NCBI GenBank assembly: GCA_002269645.1
Contig: NIVC01001846.1
Span: 1 to 64,000, forward strand
Origin: Macrostomum lignano
Lineage: Eukaryota
Direction: 5' to 3'
Length of the DNA stretch: 64,000 nt
Below are positions 1,779-51,594 of this stretch, one piece after another. The notes beneath the pieces are model-generated. The model had not been told where the DNA came from and did no database searches. It was given only the letters and a program-made list of their open reading frames with translations. The translations under genes and the position numbers were made by a program. How positions within the stretch are numbered: position 1 is the first letter of the stretch; every line of letters starts with the position of its first letter.

Positions 1779-2798
1779 TTACACAATGTGCCGATTAGCG
1801 TGCGTTTTCTGATGGCTGCCTCGATTAAATCGCTTGCACTCAAATGGCTTTTCTCCTGTGTGAACTCTAGAGTGCATAGTGAGGTTGGAGATTTGAGTAA
1901 ATCGCTTGCCGCACACCTTGCACTCAAATGGTTTTTCTCCTGTGTGAAGCCTAGAGTGCTTAGTGAGGCTGCTACTGACACTAAATCTCTTGCCGCACAC
2001 CTTGCACTCAAATGGTTTTTCTCCTGTGTGCAGCCTTGAGTGAGAAGAGAGGTTGCTGCTGAAACCGAATCTCTTGCCGCACACCTTGCACTCAAATGGC
2101 TTTTCTCCTGTGTGCCGCCTCGAGTATGTAGTGAAGGCGCTGCTGACATGGAATCTCTTGCCGCACACATTGCACTCAAATGGCTTTTCTCCTGTGTGCA
2201 CTCTATAGTGTGTAGTGAGGGCGCTGCTGAAACCGAATCTCTTGCCGCACACCTTGCACTTGTACGGTTTCGCCTTCATGTGCACTGCACTAATGTGAGC
2301 TTTGAGGTGGCATTTTCTGGTGAGCTTCTTCTGGCAAGTGTCGCACTGGAACACCCTCTCGACACCCTGAGCTTGACGTTGCCGTGTTGCAGCACTCTTT
2401 GAAGCTCGGGTGTTCCCGGCTGACTCGCACTCCGGACTCTTCGTCACTGCAGAACTGCCGGCTGCACACGGCTGCATCGCTGACTCATTGCGAGACTCGA
2501 CCTGCTCGACCGCTGCCGCTCTGCCAGCTTCTGAGTTGGTCGCAGCCGCCTCCTCTGGCTCCGAGTCGCAGCCGATTCCGTGTGACCGCACATGACGCAA
2601 GTACTGCGCCGCTGCCGATCGGGTGCGGCAGAACCGCCTGGGACAAAAGGGGCAGGCGACAGAGCCCCGGCGCATCTCTGAGAAACTGTGGGGCTGAGAT
2701 CTGTGCGGAGATGCCGATGCTCGAAGCCCGTCTCTGCCTGAGCTGCAATGCGGAGCGGTAGGGACTTCGTCACTTTGTGATCCGGAATGGAAAGACAT
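1779..2798 (-). CDS. ZF1: C2H2 zinc-finger protein, 339 aa (shared N-terminal region, leader finger, 5 TGEKP-linked fingers, deleted terminal finger)
   Basis: Open ORF from ATG 2798 with CxxC-x12-HxxxH repeats and HTGEKPFEC linkers. One finger has His>Tyr; the last finger lacks VCGK. Confidence 0.9.
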   Translation of the reverse strand: MSFHSGSQSDEVPTAPHCSSGRDGLRASASPHRSQPHSFSEMRRGSVACPFCPRRFCRTRSAAAQYLRHVRSHGIGCDSEPEEAAATNSEAGRAAAVEQVESRNESAMQPCAAGSSAVTKSPECESAGNTRASKSAATRQRQAQGVERVFQCDTCQKKLTRKCHLKAHISAVHMKAKPYKCKVCGKRFGFSSALTTHYRVHTGEKPFECNVCGKRFHVSSAFTTYSRRHTGEKPFECKVCGKRFGFSSNLSSHSRLHTGEKPFECKVCGKRFSVSSSLTKHSRLHTGEKPFECKVCGKRFTQISNLTMHSRVHTGEKPFECKRFNRGSHQKTHANRHIV

Positions 2799-3049
2799 CT
2801 AAAGGAAATGAACATCCCAATATCGAAAACATAAAGACAATTTCTGGGTTATATTGACTAATAAAAAGCATAATTTTGTATTTTATGAAAGTGATAAAAA
2901 TCCCATGCATGCTTTACTTGAATTTAAGACAACCAATTGATGATGAATTTAACCGAGTGAAAATGTTGCTGCTAAACGACATGACGTGCATGGTTAAATT
3001 TACACTGATGAGCAATCCTTGGCTCATGAGAGATAGTGACCCACAGCGG

Positions 3050-3360
3050 GTTTTATCGGGTTTCGATTGGTGTTTTAGCTAAATCAAAATAAACAGATTT
3101 TTATTTATTTATCGCTAGACTGCCTGGCAGGACCCATTAATTTCTGCCACTTGTACTGCAACTTTGCGCGACTGAACAATTTAAGGTGGATGCGCAAACC
3201 CGGAGCGAAATACTAAAAAGCCGTAACAAAAAGGCTGGGTAGGCGGCCCCACCGGCTAAGACGAGCAAAGCTCAAAGGCCAGCCAATCGAAACGGTACAA
3301 GAAGCAGTGTGAGACTCTGCTGCCCTGACAGACCACCAAGGACACATGCACTACACGTGG
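3050..3360 (-). promoter_or_regulatory. Putative core promoter/5' UTR module of ZF1
   Basis: Module recurs upstream of several paralogs. CACGTG at 3354-3359, CCAAT at 3283-3287, initiator-like TCAGTC on the minus strand at 3170-3175. Function is inferred. Confidence 0.35.
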
Positions 3361-3514
3361 ATTGTTAAAATTAATATAGAAAATCAACACAACGAGACAA
3401 ACGTAAAAAACAATAAGTAAAAATTGCAATGCACCAGTGTAATTTAAAAAATACACGAAGAAAAACAGTTTTGAAATCAAATATTTGCCTCGCATTTACA
3501 AAACTGCATTATGC

Positions 3515-4456
3515 TTAAAACATTCTGATTACAGGCTGCGATCTGTGCGGAGATGCCGATGCTCGAAGCCCGTCTTTGTACTCAAATGGCTTTTCACCTG
3601 TGTGCAGCCTTGAGTGGGAAGAGAGGCTGCTTGCTTGATTGAATCTTTTGCCGCAAACCTTGCTCTCGAAAGGCTTTTCTCCTGTGTGAAGCCTAGAGTG
3701 CTTAGTGAGGCTGCTACTGACACTAAATCTCTTGCCGCACACCTTGCACTCAAATGGCTTTTCTCCTGTGTGAAGCCTTGAGTGGGAAGAGAGGCTGCAT
3801 GCTTGATTGAATCTTTTGCCGCAAACCTTGCACTCAAATGGCTTTTCTCCTGTGTGCAGCCTAGAGTGCTTAGTGAGGCTGCTGCTGTCACTAAATCTCT
3901 TGCCGCACACATTGCACTTGTGCGGTTTCGCCTTCATGTGCACTGCACTAATGTGAGCTTTGAGGTGGCTTTTTCTGGTGAACTTCTTCTGGCAAGTGTT
4001 GCACTGGAACGCCCTCTCGACAGCCTGAGCTTGACGTTGCCGTGTTGCAGCACTGTTCAAAGCTCGGGTCTTCCCGGCTGACTCGCACTCGTAACGCTTC
4101 GTCACTGCAGAACTGCCGGCTGCACACGGCTGCATCGCTGACTCATTGCGAGACTCGACCTGCTCGACCGCCGCCGCTCTGCCAGCTTCTGAGTTGGTCG
4201 CAGCCGCCTCCTCTGGCTCCGAGTCGCAGCCGATTCCGTGTGACCGCACATGATGCAAGTACTGCGCCGCTGCCGATCGGGTGCGGCAGAACCGCCTGGG
4301 ACAAAAGGGGCAGGCGACAGAGCCCCGGCGCATCTCTGAGAAACTGTGGGGCTGCGATCTGTGCGGAGATGCCGATGCTCGAAGCGGGTTTCTGCCTGAG
4401 CTGCAATGCGGAGCGGTAGGGACTTCGTCACTTTGTGATCCGGAATGGAAAGACAT
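3515..4456 (-). CDS. ZF2: C2H2 zinc-finger protein, 313 aa, with chimeric truncated C-terminus
   Basis: Open ORF with leader finger plus 4 linked fingers (one Cys>Ser). After PFEYK it reads [14 protein letters not shown], a copy of its own N-terminal sequence (3534-3575). Confidence 0.75.
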   Translation of the reverse strand: MSFHSGSQSDEVPTAPHCSSGRNPLRASASPHRSQPHSFSEMRRGSVACPFCPRRFCRTRSAAAQYLHHVRSHGIGCDSEPEEAAATNSEAGRAAAVEQVESRNESAMQPCAAGSSAVTKRYECESAGKTRALNSAATRQRQAQAVERAFQCNTCQKKFTRKSHLKAHISAVHMKAKPHKCNVCGKRFSDSSSLTKHSRLHTGEKPFECKVCGKRFNQACSLSSHSRLHTGEKPFECKVCGKRFSVSSSLTKHSRLHTGEKPFESKVCGKRFNQASSLSSHSRLHTGEKPFEYKDGLRASASPHRSQPVIRMF

Positions 4457-6799: not shown

Positions 6800-8215
<1,416 letters not shown>

Positions 8216-9799
8216 GAATTATACTTTCAATTTTTCAGGAAAAATACATTCACCCTACATGAGGACCTAAAAGATTAAAGAACGTAGAGAAAACATTTGG
8301 TGCCATAGTTGAAACATTTCTCAAAAGAGCATTAGGCACTCCTTTCAGGGGTGGCAATTTTGGTCCTACTCGTACTGACAGACCGATTTATTGGGACATT
8401 ACTGCGGCACAATGTGGTCTAAGCTGTGTGCACGGAATAGGTCGATATGAACTGTAGAAGCAAATCTTGAGCCCTGTAACTCTTTGTGGCTGAATTTAAA
8501 TAATCGAAATTTACGCAGGCCCAAGCCTACGAGATCTCACACATCAAATGAGTTTGTGTGTTGGTAAACATGTTGTTTTAGTAAACATGGCCAAGGTACA
8601 ATAGCTGTAATGCCCATGCTTTGCAGTCGTTAATGAAAATATCATTTTCCACAGACGCAAGTTGTCTGGTGCTTCTCCAGTCTGACGCGCAATTTAGAAT
8701 TCCAAGGTGCAAATTAACAGCTGGCTAAGGATATTCTTGGTTATTTTCTTATTCTTATTCTTAGAGCTTGAGTCACACCAGCTGACTGGCGCCAGGGAGC
8801 TAAGTACTCATATAAATGCTTTTGAGAAATGTTTCACACAAAAATTGAAATTCCAACTCCATTACTCCATAGCTTATTTCTCCGTGGAAATATATGAAGA
8901 GGACACTATGAAAACAAATTCATTATCTAATAAGAAGCCATCTAATAATTAAAAAAAGTATATTATAAGGGTATTAACTTGGAAATTAGAGAATGGTAGA
9001 GAAAATGAGATCAGATGAGTTGCCGCACAGTTATCAGGGTGGCTAGGGTGAGTCATGGTGAGGAAGGTCTCGAAGAAGCAACAAAACGGGACAGAGCACC
9101 TGTCTAAAATGAGTAAAAGCAAAAAGAACATTCCTCCAGGTGTTGGCATCTTCCTGTGAAACAGACTGCTGAAGAGCAGTGTGTTCAGACGTCATGCACT
9201 TGCACAAGCAAACTCAAAGGGGCAGTGATTTGGCTTACAACCAGTCGGATGTCATGGCAGGCATGAAGATCTGCATTCAAGCGGCAACACACGTGAAGCA
9301 TTTCATGACAGGCAAAATGCGTTGCGGAGAAGCTCAGTGCGGGAAACACTCCATAAGCGGCTCGTCTGCAGGTCCCCGGACTCTGCGGCAAGTCTTCGGC
9401 CAGCCCTGCGCTTCTCTGGCTCGCTGCCGCTCCGCTACCCGCCTCAATGCGATGCCTCAGCAGAGAACTGCTGCAGCTGAAGCACTGAACCAACTTACTC
9501 AACTGACTGAATACCCGCTGGTGAGGATTTAACTGACTAAATGCCCATGAAAACAGCTGCACTCGACAGTTAACAAGCTACATGGCCTATTATAATCAAA
9601 ACCAAAGAATCAAAACATCAAGACAAAGATTAAAACTAACAAACAGTTAAAATTTGCAATTGCACTAGTGTAACTTATAAATGCAAGAACAACACGTTTT
9701 GGGATTAAATTTCAGTCTAAAGCATTTACAAGTCGCACAATGCAGACAATAATTGATTAGAGACCGGTTAAAAAAAAGACGGTCGCCAAAATGGCTTGC

Positions 9800-10400
9800 G
9801 ACTGTTCATTCCGCGACCGTTGGTCGACCGTATGTCGACCGTTCGTCGACCGTTGCCTGTCACGCGTCGACCGTTGATTTTCGACCGTCGTTTTCGTCGA
9901 CCTTTGCGACTAACAATGCGACCGTTTGGGGACCTACTCCTGCGACCGTTCCTGCGACCGTCCATCGACCGTTCCCACGACCGTCCATCGACCATTCCCG
10001 CGACCGTCCATCGACCGTTCCCACGACCGTCTATCGACCGTTCCCACGACCGTCTATCGACCGTTCCCGCGCCCGTTCCTGCGACCGTCCATCGACCATT
10101 CCTGCGACCGTCCATCGACTGTTCATCGACCGTTCCTGCGACCGTTCATCGACCGTTCCTGCGACCGTTCATCGACCGTTCCTGCGACCGTCCATCGACT
10201 GTTCATCGACCGTTCCTGCGACCGTTCATCGACCGTTCCTGCGACCGTTCATCGACCGTTCCTGCGACCGTCCATCGACTGTTCATCGACCGTTCCTGCG
10301 ACCGTTCCTGCGACCGTTCCTGTGACCCGTCCTGCGACCGTTCGTCCTCCTTTCATCGACCGTTCAGCGACTGTTTGGATTGCTCCGGCGACCCTTCGTC
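9800..10400 (+). repeat. Left subterminal array of CGACCGT-core short repeats
   Basis: Dozens of (T/G)CGACCGT motifs in ~11-22 bp units; mirrored by 12770-13300. Confidence 0.9.
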
Positions 10401-11920
10401 GCCCTAGATCGTATTATGTTCTAAAAGTCTAAAAATGAAAAAAAGCGTGTAAAGACGGAAACTTTCTTTCGCTACTAATTATTACTTTCGACAAATTGAA
10501 GATTTAACGCGTCGAAAATGTAGGAAGCGTAGACAGTGTAGACATTCTTCCCTGTTTATTTTCTACTTTTTGTTATCAATAATACCAAAAAACAAAAACA
10601 TTTGCGTATATAAACGAAGCGCATAAAGGAACAAATGCCAAAGGAGTGACAGAGAAGTGGCCAGACGGAGGGGAGAGATGAAATTGTAAGCTGGGTATTT
10701 TAGGTTAATGCAGTGCTAAATGCTAAACGCCCAGGCGCATGTGTCTCGCATTTTCGGAAACTGCACGTTCAAATTCGTGTGAGCAAGTAATTAATAGCTA
10801 CATACTTCACGCTGCTCGCGAACATTTGTGACACTAATTATAACTACTGCTTTAACTGCTATAACTGCTACTGCTATAACTATAACTATTGCTGCTGCTA
10901 TTTTACCCACCACGGCTGCTCCGTGTTGGGCAAGTAGCATAAATTTTTAAATATCGAGCTGGTGCTAGATTTAATGTAGGTGGAGTAAGGGAAAGAAAAA
11001 ACTGGTGCTCACATTGCCCAAGTAGGAAATTGCCACGAGCAAGTGTTAGTTTAAGTAGTAAAAAAATAATTCATTTTTTCAATAACTTGCCACACACTGA
11101 AGCTGCTGCACTTGTTGCCGTTTCGTTGTTGGTTTATTGTGCTGTTCTAGATGAATAAATACATTCGTCACATATATGGAATTCCATCATCTATGGTAGT
11201 GTCACTGAAAGGTGTGGAATAATGGCCACATCGATTAATTATTGCTTCTGGCTAAAAGTATACATACAATGAGAGAACACAAGCGTCAGGTAAAATGCAC
11301 AGGTTCGTATAATGGAACAACAAATGTAATTAAGTAGTTGGGCTCCGTAGTAGGATGGGATAAAGCTAGGATAGGCTTAGAAAACGAGGCACAGTTTGCC
11401 ATGAATGAAAAATATACGAATATTTTGTTATGAAAGCAGAAAATGGCAGAAAGGCCCCTTAATTAGAGGCACAAAATGCAGAAAATACTTTTATAAGGGA
11501 TATAAGGCTTCAGTAAAAGGGACTTGCAGCATATTGGAAGTTTACCTGGAGCTGATTACACACGTCTATTTTTATAGGATTAGTTTCATTTTCAGGAAGT
11601 ACTTCCAATAGACAGTATGCCTTTCTTAATCCCGTAAATATAAGGTAGCATAAAAAACATATAGTTAAAATCGTGACATGGGTCAGCTGGCGTTCTGCAG
11701 AAACAATTTTCAACGTGTCCCGATCCGATTTCGTAGCTTCCATTGCGAATAGACGACCTGATCATGTGCTTCTTTCCATACGTTGTTGGACATTAAGTCA
11801 CTTGCACTTTTTCATTCTCTAAGTAGCTAAGTAAAGAAAGGGCAAAAACGATGAGTTGGTGAAGCCATCGTGGGGGGGGCTTCTCAAGGCGGATTTTTCT
11901 GCAACTGTTTCCACCTGGCT

Positions 11921-11925
<5 letters not shown>

Positions 11926-12003
<78 letters not shown>

Positions 12004-12044
12004 GACAGAGAGAGAGACAGAGAGGGAGAGAGAGAGATCCAGAG

Positions 12045-12105
<61 letters not shown>

Positions 12106-12120
12106 TAGATAGAGAGAGAT
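11926..12120. repeat. (GA)n/(GACA)n compound microsatellite
   Basis: Direct reading. Confidence 0.95.
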
Positions 12121-12769
12121 CTGTAGAGGGATAGAGGCAGTTCTCCCTCCATCTGGATCTCTCTTTAATGTAGCCAGACTCCGTGACATACGGAGGGATC
12201 TAGAGTGACAGACGGAAAAGAACATGGACGGTTAATTTATTACGAAACGACTGTGGTAACGTATTCCTTGGGTATATTAAAAGGGTCGACCTTTACAAAC
12301 GAGCTCATTACCCTCGTTAGCCTTTTAACCCTCGAGGGTTGTTACTTTTCCACCCATGGTATGTATAACCACGATCAGTTTCTATGATGCGACGAAGACG
12401 AGGGCCCCATAGGCCTTCCCAGTAGAAACTAAGCCGCCCCCTAGGCGGCTTTGCCGCCTTCGCCAGCACCTCCGACGGTGGCTTCTGCGCTGACGCTGGC
12501 CGCCCGCTCGGCGGCGTTGCCGCCTTCGCTGGCCGCCCCCTCGGCAGCGTTGCCGCCTTCGCTGGCCGCCCCCTCGGCAGCGTTGCCGCCTTCGCTGGCC
12601 GCCCCCTCGGCAGCGTTGCCGCCTTCGCTGGCCGCCACCTCGTCAGCGTTGCCTCCCGAGGATGCTTCACTGACATCGTCGCCGTCGTCGCAGGCGTCGA
12701 CGCCTGCTTCAGCAGCTGTGCCATCCGAGGGCTCCGTGGCGGTGGCCTCGGAGCCCTCGGTGGGAAAAA

Positions 12770-13305
12770 CGGTCGAAAGAGTGGTCGATAAAACGGTCGA
12801 CGGACGGTCGACGAAACGGTCGACGGACGGTCGACAGAACAGTGGACAGAACGGTCGACAGATGGTCGCAGAGACGGTCGCCGAGATGGTCGACAAGACG
12901 GTCGACAGAACGGTCGGCAAGCCGGTCGGCAAAACGGTCGACAAAACGGTCGACAGACGGTCGACAGACGGTCGACAGACGGTCGCAGAGACGGTCGCAG
13001 AGACGGTCGCAGACAAGGTCGCAGAGATGGTCGAAGTAACGGTCGCAGAGACGGTCGCAGAGACGGTCGCAGAAGAACGGTCGCAAAAACAGTCGACGGA
13101 ACAGTCGCTACCAACGGTCGCATGCCACGGTCGCAAGAATTAGTCGCACAGTCGCACACATCGACCGTGCAGAATGGTCGACTACTCGGTCGTTCACATG
13201 GTCGCATCCGGCGACCGTGCTTAACGGGCGCTGGAATGGTCGCAATAATAGTCGACGCCGGCCATCACGGTCGCAGGACGGTCGAGGGCCCTGAAATGCG
13301 ACCGT
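12770..13305 (-). repeat. Right subterminal array of ACGGTCG repeats (reverse complement of left array)
   Basis: Direct reading. Confidence 0.9.
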
Positions 13306-13655
13306 TATTTTTTTAACCGGGAATTATAGTTAAATAAATACCTGGGAAGAAACCGAAAACGTTAGTAGCAAAAGTGAAAAACTGGTCTAGCAGTACGTCG
13401 AGAAAGTGCTTGATTGAAAAAATGCTGCAAATCGATGGATTTTGAGACTGACCGCTCAATGGACGATGTAACCAACTGGTAATTGCATCAGCTTTCGTAT
13501 ACATTATTACACGAAAATTCAAGAGGGATCATAAATACGCGTAGATAAAAACGCACTTAAAGGATTGCCAGCAGCTCAAAAACACCTGGCGCACAGTAAG
13601 CACCCAGACGCGGTGGTTCACTTCTGCAGTCACAAGAAGCAAAGTTGAATATTCG

Positions 13656-14687
13656 TTACACAATGTGCAGCCTGAAGTGCCTCTTCAGATGGCTGCCTTG
13701 ATTGAATCTCCTGCCACACACATTGCACTTAAATGGCTTTTCTCCTGTGTGCACCAATGAGTGCGTAGTCAGGTGAACTTTCTGTTTGAATTGCTTGCCG
13801 CACACCTTGCACTCAAATGGCTTTTCTCCTGTGTGCAGACTTGAGTGGGAAGAGAGATTGCTTGCTTGATTGAATCTTTTGCCGCAAACCTTGCACTCGA
13901 AAGGCTTTTCTCCTGTGTGAAGCCTAGAGTGCTTAGTGAGGCTGCTGCTGTCACTAAATCTCTTGCCGCACACCTTGCACTCAAATGGCTTTTCTCCTGT
14001 GTGCAGCCTTGAGTGGGAAGAGAGGCCCCATGCTTGACCGAATCTCTTGCCGCACACCTTGCACTCGAATGGCTTTTCTCCTGTGTGCACTCTAGAGTGT
14101 GTATTGAGGTCGCTGCTGAAACCGAATCTCTTGCCGCACACCTTGCACTTGTGCGGTTTCGCCTTCTTGTGCACTGCACTAATGTGAGCCTTTAAGTAGC
14201 TTTTTCTGGTGAACTTCTTCTGGCAAGTGTTGCACTGGAACGCCCTCTCGACAGCCTGAGCTTGACGTTGCCGTGTTGCAGCATTGTTCAAAGCTCGGGT
14301 CTTCTCGGCTGACTCGCACTCCGGACTCTTCGTCACTGCAGAACTGCCGGCTGCACACGGCTGCATCGCTGACTCATTGCGAGACTCGACCTGCTCGACC
14401 GCCGCCGCTCTGCCAGCTTCTGAGTTGGTCGCAGCCGCCTCCTCTGGCTCCGAGTCGCAGCCGATACCGTGTGACCGCACATGACGCAAGTACTGCGCCG
14501 CTGCCGATCGGGTGCGGCAGAACCGCCTGGGACAAAAGGGGCAGGCGACAGAGCCCGGGCGCATCTCTGAGAAACTGTGGGGCTGCGATCTGTGCGGAGA
14601 TGCCGATGCTCGAAGCCAGTCTCTGCCTGAGCTGCAATGTGGAGCGGTAGGGACTTCGTCACTTTGTGATCCGGAAATGAAAGACAT
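13656..14687 (-). CDS. ZF4: intact C2H2 zinc-finger protein, 343 aa (N-terminal region, leader finger, 6 fingers)
   Basis: Uninterrupted ORF from ATG 14687; all Cys/His ligands present; ends HFRLHIV*. Confidence 0.92.
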   Translation of the reverse strand: MSFISGSQSDEVPTAPHCSSGRDWLRASASPHRSQPHSFSEMRPGSVACPFCPRRFCRTRSAAAQYLRHVRSHGIGCDSEPEEAAATNSEAGRAAAVEQVESRNESAMQPCAAGSSAVTKSPECESAEKTRALNNAATRQRQAQAVERAFQCNTCQKKFTRKSYLKAHISAVHKKAKPHKCKVCGKRFGFSSDLNTHSRVHTGEKPFECKVCGKRFGQAWGLSSHSRLHTGEKPFECKVCGKRFSDSSSLTKHSRLHTGEKPFECKVCGKRFNQASNLSSHSSLHTGEKPFECKVCGKQFKQKVHLTTHSLVHTGEKPFKCNVCGRRFNQGSHLKRHFRLHIV

Positions 14688-14799
14688 CAAAGGAAGTGAA
14701 CTACACTTATAGCTAGCCTTCCTTCAACTGAAAAACAAGGGCGTCACTGTCTTGAGGGAACCTGCGGGAGTCGCCCTTGACTGAAGGAATTTCTGAGGC

Positions 14800-19965: not shown

Positions 19966-21156
19966 CTACTGCTTGGAGTGCCTCTTCAGTATGCTGGCTT
20001 TATTTAGTATCTTGCTGCACACCTTGCACTCAAATGGCTTTCCTCCTGTATGCAGTCTTGAGTGAGAAGTGAGGTTGCTGCGGTGACGAAATCTCTTGCC
20101 GCACACCTTGCAATCAAATGGCTTTTCTCCTGTGTGCAGCATTGAGTGCTTAGTGAGGCTGTAACCGTACCTCAATCTCTTGCCGCACACCTTGCACTAA
20201 AATGGCTTTTCTCCTGTGTGCACCCTGCAGTGTGCAGTGAGGTTGCTCCTACGACGAAATCTCTTGCCGCACACTTTTTACTCAAATGGCTTTTCTCCTG
20301 TGTGCACTCTAGAGTGTGTAGTGAGGTTGACGATCTGGTTGAATCTCTTGCCGCACACCTTGCACTCAAATGGCTTTTCTCCTGTGTGCACCCTGCAGTG
20401 TGCAGTGAGGTTGCTCCTACGACGAAATCTCTTGCCGCACACTTTGCACTCAAATGGCTTTTCTCCTGTGTGCAGCATTGAGTGCCTGGAGAGGCTGCAG
20501 TTGTCATTGAATCTCTTGCCGCACACATTGCACTCAAATGGCCTTTCTCCTGTGTGCACTCTAGAGTGAGTAGTGAAGTTGCTGCTGCGACTGAATCTCT
20601 TGCCGCACACCTTGCACTTGTGCGGTTTCACCTTCATGTGCACTGCACTAATGTGAGCCTTTAGGTAGCTTTTTCTGGTGAACTTCTTCTGGCAAGTGTC
20701 GCACTGGAACGCCCTCTTGACACCCTGAGCTTGACGTTGCCGTGTTGCAGCACTCTTTGAAGCCCGGGTGTTCCCGAATGTCTCGAACTCGTGACGCTTC
20801 GTCACTGCAGAACTGCCGTCTGCACACGGCTGCATCGCTGACTCATTGCGAGACTCGACCTGCTCGACCGCCGCCGCTCTGCCAGCTTCTGAGTTGGTCG
20901 CAGCCGCCTCCTCTGGCTCCGAGTCGCAGCCCATTCCGTGTGACCGCACATGACGCAAGTACTGCGCCGCTGCCGATCGGGTGCGGCAGAACCGCCTGGG
21001 ACAAAAGGGGCAGGCGACAGAGCCCCGGCGCATCTCTGAGAAACTGTGGGGCTGAGATCTGTGCGGAGATGCCGATGCTCGAAGCCCGTCTCTGCCTGAG
21101 CTGCAATGCGGAGCGGTAGGGACTTCGTCACTTTGTGATCCGGAATGGAAAGACAT
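19966..21156 (-). pseudogene. ZF6: zinc-finger gene with two premature stops (292-aa product; leader plus 8 fingers if read through)
   Basis: ATG 21156; TAA at 20278-20280 (PFE*K) and TAG at 20197-20199 (PF*CK); fingers continue to 19966. Confidence 0.8.
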
Positions 21157-21720
21157 CTAAAGGAAATGAACATCCCCAATATCGAAAACATAAAGACAAT
21201 TTCTGGGTTATATTGACTAATAAAAAGCATAATTTTCTATTTTATGAAAGTGATGAAAATCCCATGCATGCTTTACTTGAATTTAAGACAACCAATTGAT
21301 GATGGATTTAACCGAGTGAAAATGTTGCTGCTAAACGACATGACGTGCATGGTTAAATTTACACTGAGGAGCAATCCTTGGCTCATGAGAGATAGTGAGC
21401 CAAAGCGGGTTTTACCGGGTTTCGATTGGTGTTTTAGCTAAATCAAAATAAACAGTTTTTTATTTAATTATCGCTAGACTGCCTGGCAGGACCCATTGAT
21501 TTCTGCCACTTGTACTGCAACTTTGCGCGACTGAACAATTTAAGGTGGATGCGCAAACCCGGAGCGAAATACTAAAAAGCCGTAACAAAAAAGGTGGGTA
21601 GGCGGCCCCACCGGCTAAGACGAGCAAAGCTCAAAGGCCAGCCAATCGAAACGGTACAAGAAGCAGTGTGAGACTCTGCTGCCCTGACAGACCCCCAAGG
21701 ACACATGCACTACACGTGGA
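21157..21720 (-). promoter_or_regulatory. Putative ZF6 promoter, non-coding exon 1 and intron 1
   Basis: CCAAT at 21642-21646, TCAGTC at 21529-21534 (minus), donor-like CCG/GTAAAA at 21415, and pyrimidine tract plus TAG directly before ATG 21156. Donor-like motif present in 5 of 6 homologous flanks. Confidence 0.4.
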
Positions 21721-21888
21721 TTGTTAAAATTAATATAGAAAATCAACACAACGAGACAAACGTAAAAAACAATAAGTAAAAATTGCAATGCCACCAGTGT
21801 AATTGAAAAAATACACGAAGAATAGCAGTTTTGAAATCAAATATTTGCCTCGCATTTACAAAACTGCATTATGCTTAAAACATTCTGA

Positions 21889-22828
<940 letters not shown>

Positions 22829-23289
22829 TAGCTGAGTCTTACGTAAAAAAAAAGAGATTAGACAGTAATTTTTAATGGACATTTTACTGGGTGAAAGGTT
22901 ATTGCTAAACGGCAATGTGACCGGGTACATCTGCATTGATGAGCAATCCTTGGCCCCCGGTTAAGAAGGCCGGCAGTGCACTTTTACCTCTCCCCGCCAC
23001 GTCTACCCCAAACTGACCCAGTTGCACCGCCTCATTTTTCTGTCTGTATCATCTTGCTGCGTTCCTAATTCTGCGTGCTTATTTGAGACGGTTTGGGAAA
23101 TTAAACAAAACGGCGCGTTTTAAGCTGCCGAGTGTCAATGTACATCATCATTTAGAATTGCTAGCTGAGCAGCACGATCGTGAAACTTCTGTCTGTTTGG
23201 CTCTGGACGAACTGAAAAAAACAAGGGCGTCACTGTCTTGAGGGAACCTGCGGGAGTCGCCCTGGACTGAAGGAATTTCTGAGGCATTT

Positions 23290-23890
23290 AGCGGATTGAA
23301 GCCGTCTGCAGAAAATTGGACATGAAAGACGAGAAGGTTGACGTAGTCTTACTCAAGATTGACTTTTTAATCCTCATGGCGGTAGCCGCGTATGACAAAT
23401 TAGGGAACTTCTTGGTCACTCCGGTGAAGTTAGAGGTCAACGCATTCGAGAATCTAGAGGATGAAATCAAGTAGTTTGTCACCTCACAAAAACTTGTGCC
23501 TGAGCGTCACAGGTTTGACGAAGCGAAGCAAGACGAGTACCCATAAGCATATTTTGAGAACCGACTGCGAGACTGCGACAGATATGGCATTTGAATACAT
23601 TCTGCAAGAAGCTCTAAGAGACCAGTTTGTAGCCGGACTGTGCAATGCCTCCGTGGTGAAAGAACTGGTTATTAAAGACCCGTTAACATTGATACTTGCG
23701 GTGGAGACTGCTGCAGCGCAAAAGCAAGTCAGTAAGAGTGCCTTGACATCAAGGAAAGTTGGAAGCAGTCAATTTAACAAAGGACAAAATGCGACATCAA
23801 AGTAGTGCTCAAGGCCAAATGCGCATTTCGGGCAAGGCGTGCAGTTTTTTAATGAAGAAGCATCTGCCAGAGTCATGCCTGGCATGTGGA
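23290..23890 (+). pseudogene. Degenerate Ty3/Gypsy gag remnant (copy 2)
   Basis: Identical ORF-track peptides to 14800-15400. Confidence 0.6.
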
Positions 23891-24237
23891 GCCAAGTGTC
23901 GAAACTGTGAGAGAATTACTTGAAGGACTTGGGAGCTGAGCATGCATAAGTGCCTCTGAGAAATGTTTTACACAACAGCAATCGCATTTACCACTCTATA
24001 GTTTACGAGTATTCGGCAGGTGAAATTTAAATAAGAGAATGGCTGTGTTTGGAACACTATCAAAACAATTTCATTTTTTACTAAGTTATCTAATAATTAA
24101 AAATCATCTAAAAAGGTAAATTCTAAAAAAGTTCAATGGCAGAAGAAATGGGTTAAGAGAAGTTGCCGAACAGTTTGCAGGGTAGGTAGGGTGAAAATTG
24201 GAGTGGCAGGGTGACTGGTAGAGTGGCAGTGGAGTCC

Positions 24238-24462
24238 TAGGGTGGCTAAGGAGAGTCTCAGGGTGGGTTGGGTGAGTGATGGGGTGGCTAGGAAGAGTCT
24301 TAGGGTGGGTTTGGTGAGTAAAAGGGTGGCTAGGGAGTGTCTTAGGGTGGGTTGGTGAGTAAAAGGGTGGCTAGGGAGTGTCTTAGGGTGGGTTTGGTGA
24401 GTAAAAGGGTGGCTAGGGAGTGTCTTAGGGTGGGTTGGGTGAGTGATAGGGTGGCTAGGGAG
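24238..24462. repeat. 42-bp G-rich minisatellite, third locus (~5 copies)
   Basis: Same unit and flank as 15708-16058. Confidence 0.95.
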
Positions 24463-26659
24463 AGGAGACAGCTGCATTCCACAGTTTACCTGTGAAGAAA
24501 CTGGGGTCGGTCCGGGTGCCCAACCCAAGTACTATAAAAAAAGTAGGAAAAGGCGTAGTGACGCTTTGTGATACAGTAGCTCGATCTGGCGTGAAGAAGT
24601 TCAGAAGTTGCGTTGCTACCATTATTGTTGTGACACTCGCTGGTTCTTATAAAGTGCCTACCGTAAGATATAGTATAGGATATTGGTGAGTCACGAGTAT
24701 ATGACTCACGTGTGTACTCTGTTCAAGCAACTGGCAAAATATACGGAACTCCTGACATATCAAGCTATCAACCCTAAACTATTGCTGCTGGTATCTTTTA
24801 TACCGCAGTGTCAACTAATTTTACCGGACTTTGATCGGTGGTTCGGTCAACTCAAGAAAGTCAAGTTTACCTCTAAGACGCGCACAATAAAAGCTGCAAA
24901 GCGAGCCAATCGAAACGGCGCAAGCAGTGTGAGACTCTCCTGCCCTGACAGACCCCCGAGGGCCCATGCACTACACGTGGTTTGTTAAAATTAATATAAA
25001 AAATCAACAAATCCAGGCAAACATTAAAAAATAACAAGTGAAGATTGCAATGCCGCAATTGTAATTCAAAAATACATGAAGAAAAGCAAGTTTTGAGATC
25101 AAATTTTAGCTTGGCGTTTACAAAACTCAATCGCGGAGACACTATAATAACAATCATTACAGAAATTCTTGTAGAAGTTAAAATAAGTCAAACGTAAAAT
25201 ATGGGTGCTGACTCGCTGAGTAATACAGAAAACAAAGAAATACTCTTAAGATGCAAACAAAAAATTGAAACCTATAGCAGCAACAAGAAAGTGAAACACT
25301 TTCCTGTCTAGAATGTCCTGTGAATGTCATGTGTCCCGTTAATGTCCTGTCTAGCAGTACAGTCAATAAAGGTGCTTAATTAAAAGAGAAGATGCTTCAA
25401 ACCAATCAGTGGCTACTCAGACTGACCAACTGACCATTGGTTCAGCTACGGTATGCATTACTTTTGGACAATTCAAGGATGATCATTAAAATTTACAGAC
25501 AAAAAAGGCTGTTAATGGATTGCCAGTGACTTAAAAACGCGTGGCGAACACTCAGAACTCTGACTCGGTAGTTCACTTCTGCAGTCAAGGAGGGCAAAGT
25601 TTAATATTCGTTACACAATGTGCCGATTAGCGTGCGTTTTTAGATGGCTGCCTTGATTAAATCGCTTGCCGCACACCGTGCACTCAAATGGTTTTTCTCC
25701 TGTGTGCAGCCTTGAGTGAGAAGAGAGGCTGCTGCTGAAACTGAATCTCATGCCGCACACCTTGCACTCGAAAGGCTTTTCTCCTGTGTGCACCCTGGAG
25801 TGCTTAGTGAGGTTGCTGCTGTCACCAAATCTCTTGCCGCACACCTTGCACTCAAATGGTTTTTCTCCTGTGTGAAGCCTAGAGTGCTTAGTAAGGCTGC
25901 TACTGTCACAAAATCTCTTGCCGCACACCTTGCACTCAAATGGCTTTTCTCCTGTGTGAAGCCTAGAGTGCTTAGTAAGGCTGCCACTGTCACAAAATCT
26001 CTTGCCGCACACCTTGCACTCAAATGGCTTTTCTCCTGTGTGCAGACTTGAGTGGGAAGAGAGATTGCTTGCTTGATTGAATCTTTTGCCGCAAACCTTG
26101 CACTCGAAAGGCTTTTCTCCTGTGTGAAGCCTAGAGTGCTTAGTGAGGCTGCTACTGTCACAAAATCTCTTGCCGCACACCTTGCACTCAAATGGTTTTT
26201 CTCCTGTGTGAAGCCTAGAGTGCTTAGTAAGGCTGCTACTGTCACAAAATCTCTTGCCGCACACCTTGCACTCAAATGGCTTTTCTCCTGTGTGCAGCCT
26301 TGAGTGGGAAGAGAGGTTGCTGCGGCGACTGAATCTCTTGCCGCATACCTTGCACTCAAATGGCTTTTCTCGTGTGTGCAGCCTTGAGTGGGAATAGAGG
26401 CTCCATGCTTGACTGAATCTCTTGCCGCACACCTTGCACTTGTGCGGTTTCGCCTTCTTGTGCACTGCACTAATGTGAGCCTTTAAGTAGCTTTTTCTGG
26501 TGAACTTCTTCTGGCAAGTGTTGCACTGCCCGGGAAAAAAAAACATGCTAAACTTTCCAAGTCAACCATGTACTTGGATGAAATTGTTGACTTACCAAGT
26601 TTGCAAAGTATCATTGTCATGTACTTAAAAAGTATGCAATGTTTTTACCCAACTTCAAT

Positions 26660-27250
26660 CGACTTTCCAAGTTTGCAAAGTACACTTCCGATGTCTACAT
26701 CTAAGTACTTAGAAAGTATCCAAAGTAGAGCCTACTTGGTTCGACTTTCCAAGTTTGCAAAGTACACTTCCGATGTCTACATCCAAGTACTTAGAAAGTA
26801 TCCAAAGTAGAGCCTACTTGGTTCGACTTTCCAAGTTTGCAAAGTACACTTCCGATGTCTACATCCAAGTACTTAGAAAGTATCCAAAGTAGAGCCTACT
26901 TGGTTCGACTTTCCAAGTTTGCAAAGTACACTTCCGATGTCTACATCCAAGTACTTAGAAAGTATCCAAAGTAGAGCCTACTTGGTTCGACTTTCCAAGT
27001 TTGCAAAGTACACTTCCAATGTCTACATCCAAGTACTTAGAAAGTATCCAAAGTAGAGCCTATACTTGGTTCGACTTTACAAGTTTGCAAAGTACACTTC
27101 CGATGTCTACATCCAAGTACTTAGAAAGTATCCAAAGTAGAGCCTACTTGGTTCGACTTTCCAAGTTTGCAAAGTACACTTCCGATGTCTACATCCAAGT
27201 ACTTGGAAAGTATCCAAAGTAGAGCCTACTTGGTTGACTTTCCAAGTTTG
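26660..27250. repeat. 82-bp subterminal tandem repeat (~7 copies)
   Basis: CAAAGTAGAG recurs at 26721, 26803 and 26885. Confidence 0.93.
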
Positions 27251-28790
27251 CAAAATCCGTACATACACCTTTTTTACCAGCAGAATAACAGCTTTTATTT
27301 AGCTGACATCGCTCCCACTCACAAAAAATGATTATATGGCTATTCCTCGGAATTTTTGGATTCCTGAATACAGCTGAATACAGCTACAGCAATACATCCC
27401 GAAGGTGTCTGTATTTTTCTTTGGGAAGATTTATGAGCTTGGCTAGCTGCATCATCAAAGCTAGTTTTCTGTAAAAGGCAAACATTCTTTTGGATTGCAT
27501 AATTTACATGAAAAGACTCTATAAATACATTTACACAATTGCACATTGCAAGACTTTAATACTTTTACTAATCTATTTTGATAAAAATTTTAGGAAGTTT
27601 TGCTAAAATATCAGTATTTACTGATTCTTGAGTGTTTGTTTCACTAACAAATGAAATGAATATTACATCTTATATTGTTTGGGCAAATGATTATTATCTA
27701 ATTTGTTTAAACTGTCAAAATTCGAAATGAAAATTCTAATTTTCGCTTTCGCATAGGTTTGTGTAAAATTGTCCTTTTATCTTTCTTTTCAAAGTTAGGC
27801 TTTAGTTAGATAGGCCTTTTAGCAATTATTTGTTGCCGATTTTATTTCATATAGTAGTTGATATACCTTGTCGCTCAACAATTGGCTGACTATAGTTATT
27901 GTAATTGACATTTTATATGGCCCAGTAGGCCAGCCTACCCACTATGCCCTATACTGGCTATAGGCATAGGCCTGCCTTCTTGGCTTTAACTAGATCTAGA
28001 AGTTTTTTAGGGGGCTAATATTATAGTCATATGGGCTTAGTATAATACTGATACTGACTCAGAATATAAATATAGATAAAATTTTAAAACTGACTTTTGT
28101 GAGTTGTGACTTAAGAATTATTGTCTTGATCTGCATAATGGTTAGTAGGCCTATATTTATAGGAAAAATCATCTGGCCTCCCTTATCTAACCTTGACCTT
28201 GTTTACAGTTTTGCCTTTTAGCTTCTGTTTTTAATCTTCAGTTTCAGATTTAATGTCATTGTAAAAAGTGCAAGAAATGCTTCAGAGTAAAAATACTTTG
28301 TTTTTTTACTTTTAGTTTTAGACAGCTAGACTAGAATTATCCAGGCTATGTTATTAATTTTGATTGCACATTTTTTACTTTTATTATTGATAATAGATTA
28401 GTAATAATAATATTGTTTTATTAAGTCTTAGGATATATGTTGATTAGGCCCTATTGTAATTATAATCATTCTAATAAATTGTCTTTTGCTTATTAGAAAT
28501 ATAATATAAGCCTAGTTAGTTTTTAATTATAAGCCTAGAAGTATTTAAACATAAAATTTTATTTTTAGTTTATAGAATATTTTTATTTTTAGTAATTTGA
28601 TGATTTAGATTTTAAGATCAGAAAATTAAGCAATTTATAATAAAAAAATATTTAAGTATATTTATGAACTATGTAATGTTGTATTATTGGTCTATTAAGG
28701 ACAAGGCCTAAATTAAATTTTTATTTAAAAGCAAAGTAATATTTTTGTTTGGAATATATTTAGATTTCAATACTTTCTACATTTTATAAT

Positions 28791-29527
28791 GGCAGTGCTT
28801 ATCCCCACGGTACCGTAGGAATAATTTCTGTCTTATTCCAACGGTACCGTGCGAATAATTTTCTGCTTATCCACACGGCACACTGAGGAGATAGCTGCCC
28901 TATCTTCTACATATGCCGTGCGAATAATTTTCTGCTTATCCGCACGGCACACTGATGAGATAGCTGCCCTATCTTCTACATATGCCGTGCGAATAATTTT
29001 CTGCTTATCCGCACGGCACACTGACGAGATAGCTGCCCTATCTTCTACATATGCCGTGTGGGAAGTTTAGTACATACGATTTGAGTGCAGTATAACAACT
29101 TTGTTGAATTATTGTTGAATAAGTATACAGAAGGGTATCAGTAAAGCAGAATAACACGCATTTACGCATGCATATACTAGTCTAGAACTGATTCGAGTTT
29201 ATACATCAAGATCAACAGCTTCTTAGTATCCTCAGTTCAAATTCCCTTTCAATAAGCTATAAACTATTCACGCACAGCATATATATGTAGCAGATAAAAA
29301 CCGATAGGGCAGCTAGTAAAGCAGAGGGAATAAAACAGAGGACGTGTAGGGCAGCTATCTCGTCAGTGTGCCGTGCGGATAAGCAGAAAATTATTCCCAC
29401 GGCATATGTAGAAGATAGGGCAGCTATCTCGTCAGTGTGCCGTGCGGATAAGCAGAAAATTATTCGCACGGTACCGTTGGAATAAGACAGAAATTATTCC
29501 TACGGTACCGTGGGGATAAGCACTGCC
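28791..29527. mobile_element. Mutator-like MITE, 737 bp, nested in the CMC-like element
   Basis: Long TIRs (~185 bp) starting GGCAGTGCTTATCCCCACGGTACC; perfect 9-bp TSD TTTTATAAT (28782-28790, 29528-29536); 69-bp internal units (3 left, 2 right). Confidence 0.9.
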
Positions 29528-30269
29528 TTTTATAATATCTATATCTATACATCTATAGATACATCTATACATACATCTATAAAAATATTTTAAAGACTTA
29601 TTTATTACATTCAAAAAAAAGATTGCTATTAGTCTCAAAATAGTAATTATATTATAAAGTGCATTTACTTGGCATTTCTTTAGATTAAGAACTATTACCT
29701 GGGTAAAACTTACATGGTTTAATTTTTTTGTGAAATATCCAATTATTCATATTCACTTAAATTTCCATTTCAGCTACCATCTACAAATGTCATCATCTAT
29801 ATTAAAAAAACCTGCTGAAAACAATGAAGATTTGTTAGCTGTATAATTGTACATTTTTTACTAATTTTGTTCAAAAAAATTGGCACCTGACTAAGCAATT
29901 TATTTTTTATGCTGCTTTTTCTTTGTCTTGCATTTTTCTGCCTGTGATCATCTGAATAATTTGTTAAGTTGCAACTTTTATGTGCATCAATACTTTGAAT
30001 ACAATATAACAGTACACTTAACAATTATTTTGAAGCTCCTATTGCTTGTTGAATTTTTTCTTTAACAAGTGAAATTCTGTATGATGGAATTATTTTTTGT
30101 TCTTTGTAACTTTTGCAAGTCCATGGTATGAGTTATCAACATTTTGCCAAGTGCTCTATAGATAAATTAGATATTTAATACATTCACACTTGGAACCATA
30201 TACTTTCTAGTAAATAAGTCACCTAAATCAATTTGAAATGTGATAAGTATTTATAGCTCTTGTGAACAT

Positions 30270-30760
30270 TGCATACTTGGAAGGTACTTGAAAAGTGATT
30301 TAAGAAAACATTGCATACTTGGAAAGTACTTGAGAAGTGACTTGAGAAAACATAGCATACTTGGAAAGTACTTGAGAAGTGACTGGAGAAAACATAACAT
30401 ATTTGGAAAGTACTTGAGAAGTGACTGGAGAAAACATTGCATACTTGGAAAGTACTTAAGAAGTGACTGGAGAAAACATTACATACTTGGAAAGTACTTG
30501 AGAAGTGACTGGAGAAAACATTGCATACTTGGAAAGTACTTGAGAAGTGACTGGAGAAAACATTGCATACTAGGAAAGTACTTAAGAAGTGACTGGAGAA
30601 AACATTACATACTTGGAAAGTACTTGAGAAGTGACTGGAGAAAACATTGCATACTTGGAAAGTACTTGAGAAGTGACTGGAGAAAACATTGCATACTTGG
30701 AAAGTACTTGAGAAGTGACTGGAGAAAACATTGCATACTTGGAAAGTTTATTGAGTGTAC
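30270..30760. repeat. 42-bp subterminal tandem repeat (~11 copies; ACTTGGAAAGTACTTGAGAAGTGACTGGAGAAAACATTGCAT)
   Basis: Direct reading; 14-aa periodic ORF. Confidence 0.93.
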
Positions 30761-31853
30761 TTGGAAAACTTAGAAAGTACTTAGGCCACGAGGTTGCATT
30801 GTTGACTTACCAAGTACTTAGCAAGTTTGGTTTGTTTTATTTTCTCGGGTGGAACGCCCTCTCGACAGCCTGAGCTTGACGTTGCCGTGTTGCAGCACTG
30901 TTCAAAGCTCGGGTCTTCTCGGCTGACTCGCACTCCGGACTCTTCGTCACTGCAGAACTGCCGGCTGCACACGGCTGCATCGCTGACTCATTGTGAGACG
31001 CGACTTGCTCGACCGCCGCTTTGACAGCTTCTGAGTTGGTCGCAGCCGCCTCCTCTGGCTCCGAGTCGCAGCCCATTCCGTGTGACCGCACATGACGCAA
31101 GTACTGCGCCGCTGCCGATCGGGTGCGGCAGAACCGCCTGGGACAAAAGGGGCAGGCGACAGAGCCCCGGCGCATCTCTGAGAAACTGTGGGGCTGCGAT
31201 CTGTGCGGAGATGCCGATGCTCGAAGCCAGTCTCTGCCTGATCTGCAATGCGGAGCGGTAGGGACTTCGTCACTTTGTGATCCGAAATGGAAAGACATCT
31301 AAAGGAAATGAACATCCCAGATATCGAAAACATAAAGACAATTGCTGGGTTATATTGACAAATTTAAAGCAGAATTTTGTATTTTATGAAAGTGATAAAA
31401 ATCCCATGCATGCTTTACTTGAATTTAAGACAACCAATTGATGATGGATTTAACCGAGTGAAAATGTTGCTGCTAAACGGCATGATGTGCATGGCAAAAT
31501 TCACACTGATGAGCAATTTATCATGATTAAAACATTCTGATTAGAGAATGTTTGTAAAAAGTTAGATGAATTTAAATGAGTACTGAAAATGCGTGAGTAC
31601 TAATACAATAAGTAATGAAGTGAAAAACTGAAAATGCTGGAAACCAATCAGTTACTGAGATACTGAGACTAACAGGTCATTGGATGCTGTAACTAACTGG
31701 CTATTGAATCCGCTTTCATTGACATTTTTGGGACAGTTCTTAATACGTACAGCCAAAAAAGCTGCTGATCTACTGCTAGTGAATTGAAAATGCCTGGCGC
31801 ACAGTAAGGACCCAGACGTAGTGGCAATCACGGAGCGCAAAGTTTAATATTCA

Positions 31854-32589
31854 TTAAACAATGTGCTGCTTGGAGTGCCTTTTCAGATCGCTGCCTTAAC
31901 TGAATCTTTTGCATAACACCTTGCACTCGAATGGCTTTTTCCTGTGTGCACCCTGGAGTGCTTAGTGAGGTTGCTGCTGTCACTAAATATCTTGCCGCAC
32001 AGCTTGCACTCAAACGGCTTTTCTCCTGTGTGCAGTCTTGAGTGAGAAGAGAGGTTGCTGCGGCGACTGAATCTCTTTCTGCACACCTTGCACTCAAATG
32101 GCTTTTCTCCTGTGTGCACCCTGGAGTGCCTAATGTGGCTGCTGCTGACACTAAATCTCTTGCCGCACACCTTGCACTTGTGCGGTTTCGCCTTTATGTG
32201 CACTGCACTAATGTGAGCCTTTAGGTAGCTTTTTCTGGTGAACTTCTTCTGGCAAGTTTTGCACTGGAACGGTCTCTCGATGCCCTGAGCTCGACGGTGT
32301 CGTGTTGCAGCACTCTTTGAAGCTGGGGTCCTCTCGACTGACTCACACTCGTGACGCTTCATCACTGCAGAACTGCCGGCTGCACACGGCTGCATCGCTG
32401 ACTCATTGTGAGACGCGACTTGCTCGACCGCCGCTCTGACAGCTTCTGAGTTGGTCGCAGCCGCCTCCTCTGGCTCCGAGTCGCAGCCCATTCCGTGTGA
32501 CCGCACATGACGTAAGTACTGCGCCGCTGCCGCTAGGGTGCGGCAGAATCGCCTGGGACAAAGGGGGCGGGCGACAGATACCCGGGGCA
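31854..32589 (-). pseudogene. ZF9: 5'-truncated zinc-finger pseudogene (leader plus 4 fingers)
   Basis: Homology starts at ~32589; -1 frameshift at ~31938 and TAA at 31896-31898, both shared with ZF3. Confidence 0.85.
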
Positions 32590-51546: not shown

Positions 51547-51594
51547 GGCTGGAGAATAAAAAAAGTGCTGGAGTCACTGGGTGCTTAGGGATAC

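Follow-up and report, generated by a model that had tools for sequence, protein, structure and literature searches.

Emerson and Thomas are said to have described, in 2009, lineage-specific tandem families of zinc-finger (ZNF) genes under contact-residue diversification. To our knowledge, functional tests of ZNF expansions linked to transposable elements (TEs) have been made only for tetrapod KRAB-ZFPs and zebrafish FiNZ-ZNFs. Here we describe a cluster of Cys2-His2 (C2H2) ZNF genes in the free-living flatworm Macrostomum lignano (assembly GCA_002269645.1, Mlig_3_7, DV1 line); the stretch of DNA analysed, referred to below as the window, comprises positions 1-64000 of the 84,572-nt contig NIVC01001846.1. 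We put the probability at roughly 0.75 that the cluster represents an M. lignano-specific family of single-exon poly-C2H2 genes, arranged head-to-tail and evolving by birth-and-death. This is an undescribed family of a kind already known, that of the lineage-specific tandem ZNF families, and no literature on it or on its gene IDs was found. Such families with orphan N-terminal sequences are an established concept, as is the link to TEs proposed for them (Wells et al. 2023, PMC10547256); the main text of that paper makes no mention of flatworms.

The FiNZ-ZNFs of cyprinid fish (PMC10547256) are likewise lineage-restricted tandem poly-C2H2 genes with a short, orphan, Glu-rich N-terminal sequence, many young paralogs and variation focused on the recognition helix. 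They number ~700 copies, against the tens seen so far in the M. lignano family, and TE repression has been shown for FiNZ, whereas in the M. lignano family, whose N-terminal region shows no constraint, it would be a prediction. The FiNZ sequence is 28 aa long and restricted to cyprinids; the M. lignano N-terminal region is set beside it by description, not by sequence, and an exhaustive search with that region (described below) returned no fish ZNF family members. Tetrapod KRAB-ZFP clusters share the head-to-tail arrangement, segmental duplication, a finger array in one exon, gain and loss of fingers, birth-and-death with many pseudogenes, and conserved TGEKP[FY] linkers. The M. lignano genes differ from them in lacking KRAB, in having the entire coding sequence, N-terminus included, in one open reading frame (ORF), in belonging to a flatworm, and in having no known KAP1-type partner.

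Nine paralogs lie head-to-tail on the minus strand within positions 1779-32590 of the window (~31 kb). Searched by BLAST with the 5' region of the best copy, the window yielded ten pieces that make up nine loci, every one of them on the minus strand, and a regular-expression scan of the window found 69 minus-strand C2H2 fingers between 1860 and 32263, together with one plus-strand finger (22655-22717, in an inverted fragment) and one chance match elsewhere. An earlier note on this DNA had counted nine same-strand paralogs; the nine minus-strand loci stand, but one of its paralogs proved to be the N-terminal part (G9) and the array (G8) of a single gene split by a 4.3-kb insertion. In a typical copy, an orphan N-terminal region of ~110 aa is followed by an unusual first finger (F0) and then by 3-13 tandem fingers of 84 bp, rather than the 4-13 first reported. 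The N-terminal region and array form one uninterrupted ORF in G1, G2, G4, G5 and G6, so the earlier description of whole arrays in one exon is apt for these, but most copies carry lesions. Fingers were taken as C2H2 where units of the form C-x2-C-x12-H-x3-H, joined by TGEKP-type linkers, exceeded the Pfam gathering score; for G4, zf-C2H2 matched with E=5.5e-36 over 7 stretches and zf-H2C2_2 with E=2.1e-48 (PF00096 / PF13465). Tandem Repeats Finder (TRF) detected 84-bp arrays at every locus, with super-periods of 168, 252 and 336 bp often scoring better. The copies are thus taxon-restricted, clustered and young: they occur in M. lignano only, nine of them lie in 31 kb, and the proportion of synonymous differences (pS) between their N-terminal regions is ~0.05. 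The pieces of the cluster, in order along the window, are:

1779-2798, minus strand: G1, a 339-aa ORF with N-terminal region, F0, 5 fingers and a truncated terminal finger
3515-4456, minus strand: G2, a 313-aa ORF with N-terminal region, F0 and 4 fingers, lacking the terminal finger
6830-8218, minus strand: G3, a pseudogene with 10 fingers
13656-14687, minus strand: G4, intact, 343 aa from the first ATG, with N-terminal region, F0, 5 internal fingers and a terminal finger
17205-18788, minus strand: G5, the longest array, with F0, 12 fingers and a terminal finger (thirteen after F0)
19969-21156, minus strand: G6, with N-terminal region, F0, 7 fingers and a degenerate terminal finger
21889-22857, minus strand: G7, a rearranged fragment made up of the start of the 5' exon, an inverted finger piece attached to it and then 7 fingers
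22607-22717, plus strand: the inverted piece inside G7, comprising the end of F0 and a first finger whose helix, SRSSNFTT, is that of G6 finger 1
25611-26527, minus strand: G8, with F0, 9 fingers and a terminal finger, frame intact; the 3' part of the gene whose 5' part is G9
26528-30850: the insertion, 4,323 bp, AT-rich (33% GC), between the G9 and G8 parts of one gene
30851-31298, minus strand: G9, N-terminal region only, running to a stop within the insertion
31883-32590, minus strand: G10, 5'-truncated at Met42, with F0 and 3 fingers, then a linker deletion and a dead terminal finger

Self-comparison of the window revealed two duplicated units, 1833-3918 versus 20191-22277 (93.6% identical; G1-G2 versus G6-G7) and 14726-18035 versus 23210-26440 (~95%; the G5 region versus the G8 region). 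On four other contigs of this assembly there are a further four to six copies in each 21 kb, which use the same helix words in differing orders. Positions 9762-4572 of the window are 99.3% identical to NIVC01003345.1, including the pattern of frameshifts along the G3 finger array, which indicates that these lesions are real. Two adjoining matches were found on another stretch (L005, on NIVC01002369.1), where window positions 33586-30850 correspond to 7648-10395 (98.5%) and 7376-1917 to 10482-15935 (97%). NIVC01002369.1 therefore joins a G9-type 5' end to the tail of a G3-type array, and this chimeric join is the annotated gene P0002. The contig is without the 4.3-kb insertion and without ~23.5 kb holding G8, G7, G6, G5, G4 and the 5' part of G3; whichever state is ancestral, the junction is the footprint of unequal recombination between paralogs. 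The earlier description of the repertoire as recombining is borne out by this chimeric gene, by the 23.5-kb copy-number difference and by an internal 336-bp (four-finger) duplication in G5.

G1 and G6, members of the duplicated two-gene unit, diverge by 3.6% in their 5' regions, 8.7% in their scaffolds and 40.8% in their helices, a contrast best explained by similar 5' halves having been joined to arrays of different ancestry. More divergent members of the family, with N-terminal regions 62-78% identical and other helix words (e.g. SVSSHLTT and SDVSSFTR), adjoin an Npa1/NopRA1 gene on stretch L004 (NIVC01000647.1: 346954-367928). The family is thus also present outside the main cluster type.

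Within the arrays, analyses were based on the 61 internal fingers of the window. Adjacent units are 78-87% alike in DNA, and two- or four-finger periods match better (TRF). The units had been described as nearly identical outside the helix, which holds at the protein level but not in DNA, given this divergence between neighbours and a scaffold pS across fingers of ~0.30. The 33 distinct helix words are mostly one- or two-residue variants; words are reused, as the earlier note had it, but the eight that it named account for only 31 of the 61 fingers. Clustering by scaffold nucleotides alone recovered the helix types (Mantel r=0.54, 0/2000 permutations as high), and the xDSSSLTK/xVSSSLTK, NQASNLSS and NQISNLTT/GFSSDLNT fingers each have synonymous scaffold markers of their own. 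Since these markers co-vary with helix type, the arrays are composed of about six whole-finger lineages that have been duplicated, lost and re-ordered as units. Several helix families nevertheless have one scaffold haplotype in common, and finger pairs whose scaffolds are identical still show differences at 26% of helix sites, synonymous and nonsynonymous alike, so that some scaffold homogenisation, or a deeper age of the helix segments, is likely.

These diverged lineages do not support the idea of homogenised, PRDM9-like arrays. The PRDM9 minisatellite also consists of 84-bp tandem fingers, and its variants differ in the number and order of fingers drawn from a limited vocabulary. By contrast, the M. 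lignano family is multicopy and without PR/SET, and its units are far more diverged and fall into distinct whole-unit lineages. PRDM9 repeats are near-identical and differ at three codons (-1, 3 and 6), whereas in M. lignano positions -2, +1 and +5 vary equally.

Variation between fingers is concentrated in the recognition helix. Amino-acid entropy was 1.2-2.5 bits at helix positions -2 to +6 and at most 0.65 bits in the scaffold, bar position +10 (L/V, 0.99). Across all finger pairs (Nei-Gojobori), the proportion of nonsynonymous differences (pN) was 0.034 and pS 0.295 in the scaffold, a nonsynonymous to synonymous ratio (dN/dS, or omega) of 0.09, compared with pN 0.43, pS 0.41 and dN/dS 1.09 in the helix and dN/dS 0.73-0.77 when the four canonical contacts are taken by themselves. 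Counts inside six finger families were 27 nonsynonymous (N) to 5 synonymous (S) changes in the helix and 18 N to 24 S in the scaffold (Fisher p=3e-4). The set was then enlarged with 74 canonical units from five other M. lignano loci, to 135 in total, and changes were counted on a minimum spanning tree of the 74 distinct units, excluding the linker since extraction had required it. By this simple counting, helix omega on the tree was 1.2-1.9 and contact-residue omega 0.8-1.7. Core scaffold omega was 0.22-0.28, and this persisted on the shortest tree edges (<=3 nt).

The finger fold, in its zinc-ligand and scaffold codons, has thus been under clear past purifying selection. The recognition helix holds excess diversity, and its evolution is relaxed or diversifying. 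The rapidly diversifying recognition that the earlier note proposed is upheld in so far as N:S counts differ between helix and scaffold (Fisher p 6e-4 to 3e-9), but omega in the helix is not significantly above 1. Similarly, the expected excess of dN/dS at positions -1, 2, 3 and 6 over the scaffold appears as an excess of the helix as a whole: its most variable positions are -2 and -1, and the canonical contacts are no more variable than -2, +1 and +5.

The N-terminal region of the family was found in M. lignano only. Ten protein clusters, all of them from this species, were matched by 180 aa taken from the N-terminal part of the best copy, and HMMER, run exhaustively against 1.84 billion representative proteins, likewise found the region nowhere else; both results agree with the earlier suggestion that the family is lineage-specific. 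The ~110 aa before F0 comprise a C-x2-C-x16-H-x3-H motif, a Glu/Ala-rich stretch and a variable linker. No KRAB (PF01352), ZAD (PF07776), BTB (PF00651), SET or SCAN (PF02023) match was obtained in Pfam for this region at E up to 10, at which only sub-threshold C2H2-like matches appeared. No copy contains a SET domain, for which the single ORF of N-terminal region and array leaves no room, and Pfam finds C2H2-type models only, consistent with the absence of KRAB, ZAD, BTB and SET noted before. A sequence search of the PDB with the N-terminal region returned only single generic zinc-finger peptides (E >0.3), and AlphaFold2 modelling of the region with F0, from a 13-sequence family alignment, gave a mean predicted local distance difference test score (pLDDT) of 48.9.

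As in insect ZAD-ZNF clusters, which are also lineage-specific, an N-terminal zinc-binding module precedes the array; ZAD, however, is a four-Cys motif, unlike C-x2-C-x16-H-x3-H, and no ZAD match was found. A weak lead points to BED-type fingers (PF02892). Over 36 columns, hhalign aligned the segment SFSEM..VACPFC..x16..YLRHVRSH to BED units with a probability of 67%, and phmmer gave a weak match of the N-terminal region to an anchovy BED-repeat protein. The conserved Trp/Phe pair of BED is, however, missing from the M. lignano motif, for which Pfam gave no zf-BED match, a weak one (E=0.042) falling on F0 instead; the resemblance is unproven.

Across 17 paralogs the N-terminal region showed pS 0.047 and pN 0.051, with 65 nonsynonymous and 14 synonymous variants. 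Its omega of ~1.4 (about 1-1.4) is not different from 1 and differs from that of the finger scaffold (p=8e-7); omega is 2.5 in the linker (aa 71-110; p=0.08) and ~1 in F0 too. The similarity of the 5' halves therefore reflects youth or homogenisation, not measurable constraint.

The state of each copy was judged by three-frame translation, and 7 or 8 of the nine carry lesions, in the form of frameshifts, stops, broken zinc ligands, the 4.3-kb insertion or rearrangements. In G4, F0 reads CNTCQKKFTRKSYLKAHISAVH and the terminal finger has the helix NQGSHLKR. A TTGCAG, likely a trans- or cis-splice acceptor, ends at 14632 and the probable true start Met lies at 14564; G4 is unannotated, and an exact-product look-up found no match for it. 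In G1, finger 2 has Tyr in place of its first His, and 12 bp are gone from the terminal finger, the second Cys among them. The fourth finger of G2 has Ser for its first Cys. G3 has a 7-nt deletion at its start, 24-nt and 2-nt deletions in the N-terminal region, and 1-nt deletions in finger 8 and in the last linker. In G5, the initial 40 bp of the long ORF are missing, with Met42 retained, and a 1-nt insertion in an A6 run ahead of the terminal finger is either real or an assembly error. G6 contains in-frame stops at 20278-20280 (TGC to TAA) and 20197-20199 (GAG to TAG), G7 has neither N-terminal region nor F0, and G10 lacks the first Cys of the N-terminal CPFC motif. The 1-nt linker deletion and the tail that follows it are common to G3, G10 and P0002. 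The arrays of G2 (3534-3575) and G7 (21894-21938) both end inside a finger, fused to a 42-46-bp copy of their own 5'-exon sequence (42 bp in G2) that starts a few bases past the putative 5' end of the mRNA.

The insertion lies precisely at the junction of the ...ERAF and QCNTC codons of the G9-G8 gene. It is bounded by an imperfect 17-bp inverted repeat (CCCGAGAAAATAAAAC / CCCGGGAAAAAAAAAAC), and its interior holds tandem repeats (82-bp x7, 69-bp x3 and 42-bp x11.5) and a 190-bp internal inverted repeat. It has no coding capacity, no second copy among the M. lignano sequences compared and no clear TE class. An intron was considered and rejected: the upstream exon meets a TAA before the first GT donor, and the sequence is missing from the corresponding site of NIVC01002369.1, where the flank is 98.5% identical. 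For these two reasons the interruption is taken to be an insertion.

RNA-seq-derived NCBI models lie on three copies (G1, G6 and G8) and start right after the TTGCAG acceptor:

2741-1779, minus strand: G1 model BOX15_Mlig015862g1, with an 84-nt gap skipping finger 2
21099-20278, minus strand: G6 model, 273 aa, 4 fingers
26546-25611, minus strand: G8 model, 171 aa, fingers skipped

The transcript-based NCBI proteins of the family all begin 'SGRD...', which is the codon series directly 3' of TTGCAG in the DNA; the annotation pipeline cut transcripts at mapped spliced-leader sites (PMC5730564). The 84-nt 'intron' of the G1 model removes exactly the finger with the zinc-binding His to Tyr change. 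As the counterpart of G1 on NIVC01002369.1 is without this defective finger, the gap probably arose from a transcript of that counterpart mapped here, not from splicing.

Taken together, these results show how the cluster has evolved. It grew by tandem segmental duplication, as seen in the G1-G2/G6-G7 and G5/G8 regions, and unequal (non-allelic) recombination swaps parts among paralogs, giving rise to chimeric genes and to copy-number differences between haplotypes or duplicated chromosomes. Array length and order change through in-register gain and loss of 84-, 168- and 336-bp modules from the six or so finger lineages. Purifying selection has acted on zinc-ligand and scaffold codons, whereas the helix codons from -2 to +6 diversify or are free of constraint. 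With ~5% synonymous divergence, the 5' half evolves neutrally, and most copies in the window are disabled. Mature mRNAs may begin at the splice acceptor just 5' of 'SGRD', with translation from Met42 (MRRGSVACPFC...). The products of G4, perhaps of G5 and G1, and the annotated products of G6 and G8 would be putative nuclear sequence-specific DNA-binding proteins of differing specificities, in which an atypical, possibly BED-like N-terminal finger and an acidic, largely disordered stretch would form the non-DNA-binding part. A minority of copies has an intact reading frame, and these probably code for DNA-binding proteins.

Several observations weigh against this reading of a family with working members. 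Of the nine copies, G4 alone is fully intact. The excess of helix omega over neutrality is not significant (binomial p 0.2-0.4), so relaxed constraint fits equally well as adaptation, and the purifying signal on the scaffolds may predate the present copies. With omega at ~1, nothing in the N-terminal region points to an effector domain under selection. Where a family has many copies, RNA-seq models may be built on multi-mapping reads, and the skipping of fingers in two of the three models suggests that reads came from other copies. Some single-base indels, such as that in G5, may be long-read assembly errors.

The alternative that fares best is genome defence in the manner of KRAB-ZFPs and FiNZ-ZNFs, in which an arms race against transposons or satellites would drive positive selection on the helices, with the orphan N-terminal region serving as a new kind of repressor domain; we consider it unlikely. 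It would account for the nonsynonymous excess in the helix, yet helix omega is not significantly >1 and the canonical contacts show no enrichment relative to the helix positions beside them. Turnover of copies and of fingers is fast, but the majority of copies are broken. The N-terminal region contains a Glu-rich stretch, a feature noted for KRAB and FiNZ (PMC10547256), but its omega of ~1 and predicted disorder are unlike a conserved effector domain. The setting is in keeping with defence: more than half of the M. lignano genome is repeats, with 21% LTR (long terminal repeat) elements (PMC5730564), ZNF numbers track retroelement load across metazoans (PMC10547256), and TE fragments lie in and around the cluster. 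A fuller version, in which the family would be the flatworm counterpart of KRAB-ZFPs and FiNZ-ZNFs, acquiring new specificities by module recombination and recruiting silencing through an undescribed N-terminal module (possibly a BED-derived finger with an acidic tail) in an animal without KRAB/KAP1, we consider doubtful. The targeting of TEs or satellites is proposed by analogy. The earlier comparison with KRAB-ZFPs and PRDM9 is thus right on the style of evolution and exceeds the evidence on function.

A purely decaying cluster is a serious rival, even if we judge it improbable: a once-functional ZNF gene would have been amplified by segmental duplication in a repeat-rich region, and its copies would now be drifting without function. 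The 7 or 8 copies of nine with frameshifts, stops, lost ligands, the insertion or rearrangements fit such decay, as do lesions common to several contigs, hence old and real, and omega values of ~1 in the N-terminal region, F0 and the helix. Conversely, core scaffold omega stays at 0.22-0.28 even on tree edges of <=3 nt, G4 is fully intact, the G5 and G8 arrays are long and open, and transcript-based models lie on three copies.

That collapsed or duplicated haplotigs mimic a cluster is very improbable. The DV1 line has extra chromosome copies and the Mlig_3_7 assembly is redundant, with 180 Mb in blocks of at least 95% identity (PMC5730564), and one frameshift lies in a homopolymer run; but the nine copies sit on one contig, are 80-96% alike, each with its own array and flanks, and their lesions are seen again on independent contigs. 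It is scarcely credible that the family specifies recombination hotspots in the way of PRDM9: the resemblance, a variable tandem array whose finger vocabulary is reused, is superficial, and this is a many-copy family, not a single locus, that has no SET or KRAB domain, units 78-87% alike and not near-identical, and variation beyond positions -1, 3 and 6.

Other features of the window were also recorded. A 42-bp satellite (GGGTGAGTGATAGGGTGGCTAGGGAGAGTCTTAGGGTGG-like, 91-96% matches) occurs at 2-788, 15707-16059 and 24239-24464, ~1 kb downstream of G1, G5 and G8, and belongs to the duplicated unit; as the contig, and with it the window, begins inside this satellite, the cluster may extend past the assembly edge. 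The duplicated spacer between ZNF genes contains two identical 114-aa ORFs on the plus strand (14975-15319 and 23461-23805; ...ALRDQFVAGLCNASVVKELV...) with no Pfam match, which may resemble a retrotransposon Gag fragment.

Beyond the cluster, Ty3/gypsy-type pol fragments (RNase H, integrase zinc-binding domain and integrase core) lie on the plus strand at 38077-39051 and 40853-41674; a repeat-rich block (39631-40430) lies between the two, and a 315-bp direct repeat (39012-39325 and 40559-40873, 97% identical) flanks them. On the minus strand at 47127-51546, two adjacent long ORFs, of which one (834 aa) encodes many ankyrin repeats and the other (625 aa) an Ion_trans domain, appear to be parts of a single TRP-type channel gene broken by a short intron or frameshift near 49004-49042. 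An open 429-aa ORF at 59717-61006 (minus strand), with HTH_48 and DDE_3/Transposase_1 domains, encodes an apparently intact mariner/Tc1-type transposase. Minisatellites with periods of 12-80 bp occupy 9753-10432, 12317-13207, 51574-52818, 54215-55061, 55875-56789 and 62344-62881, and yield long spurious ORFs in several frames that are not indicative of genes. Rfam and tRNA scans of the window gave no matches.

The cluster displays directly the mechanisms that generate such families, namely segmental duplication, chimeric genes from unequal recombination and the shuffling of modules. M. lignano is transformable and amenable to RNA interference (RNAi). If some copies are functional, a single RNAi trigger directed at the N-terminal sequence that they share could silence the family as a whole and so test TE repression outside vertebrates; if they are not, the cluster is a clear case of how fast such clusters decay. 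Should the family prove to be a genome-defence counterpart of the vertebrate systems, it would offer, because RNAi and transgenesis are available in M. lignano, a direct invertebrate test of the proposed metazoan-wide link between ZNFs and TEs.

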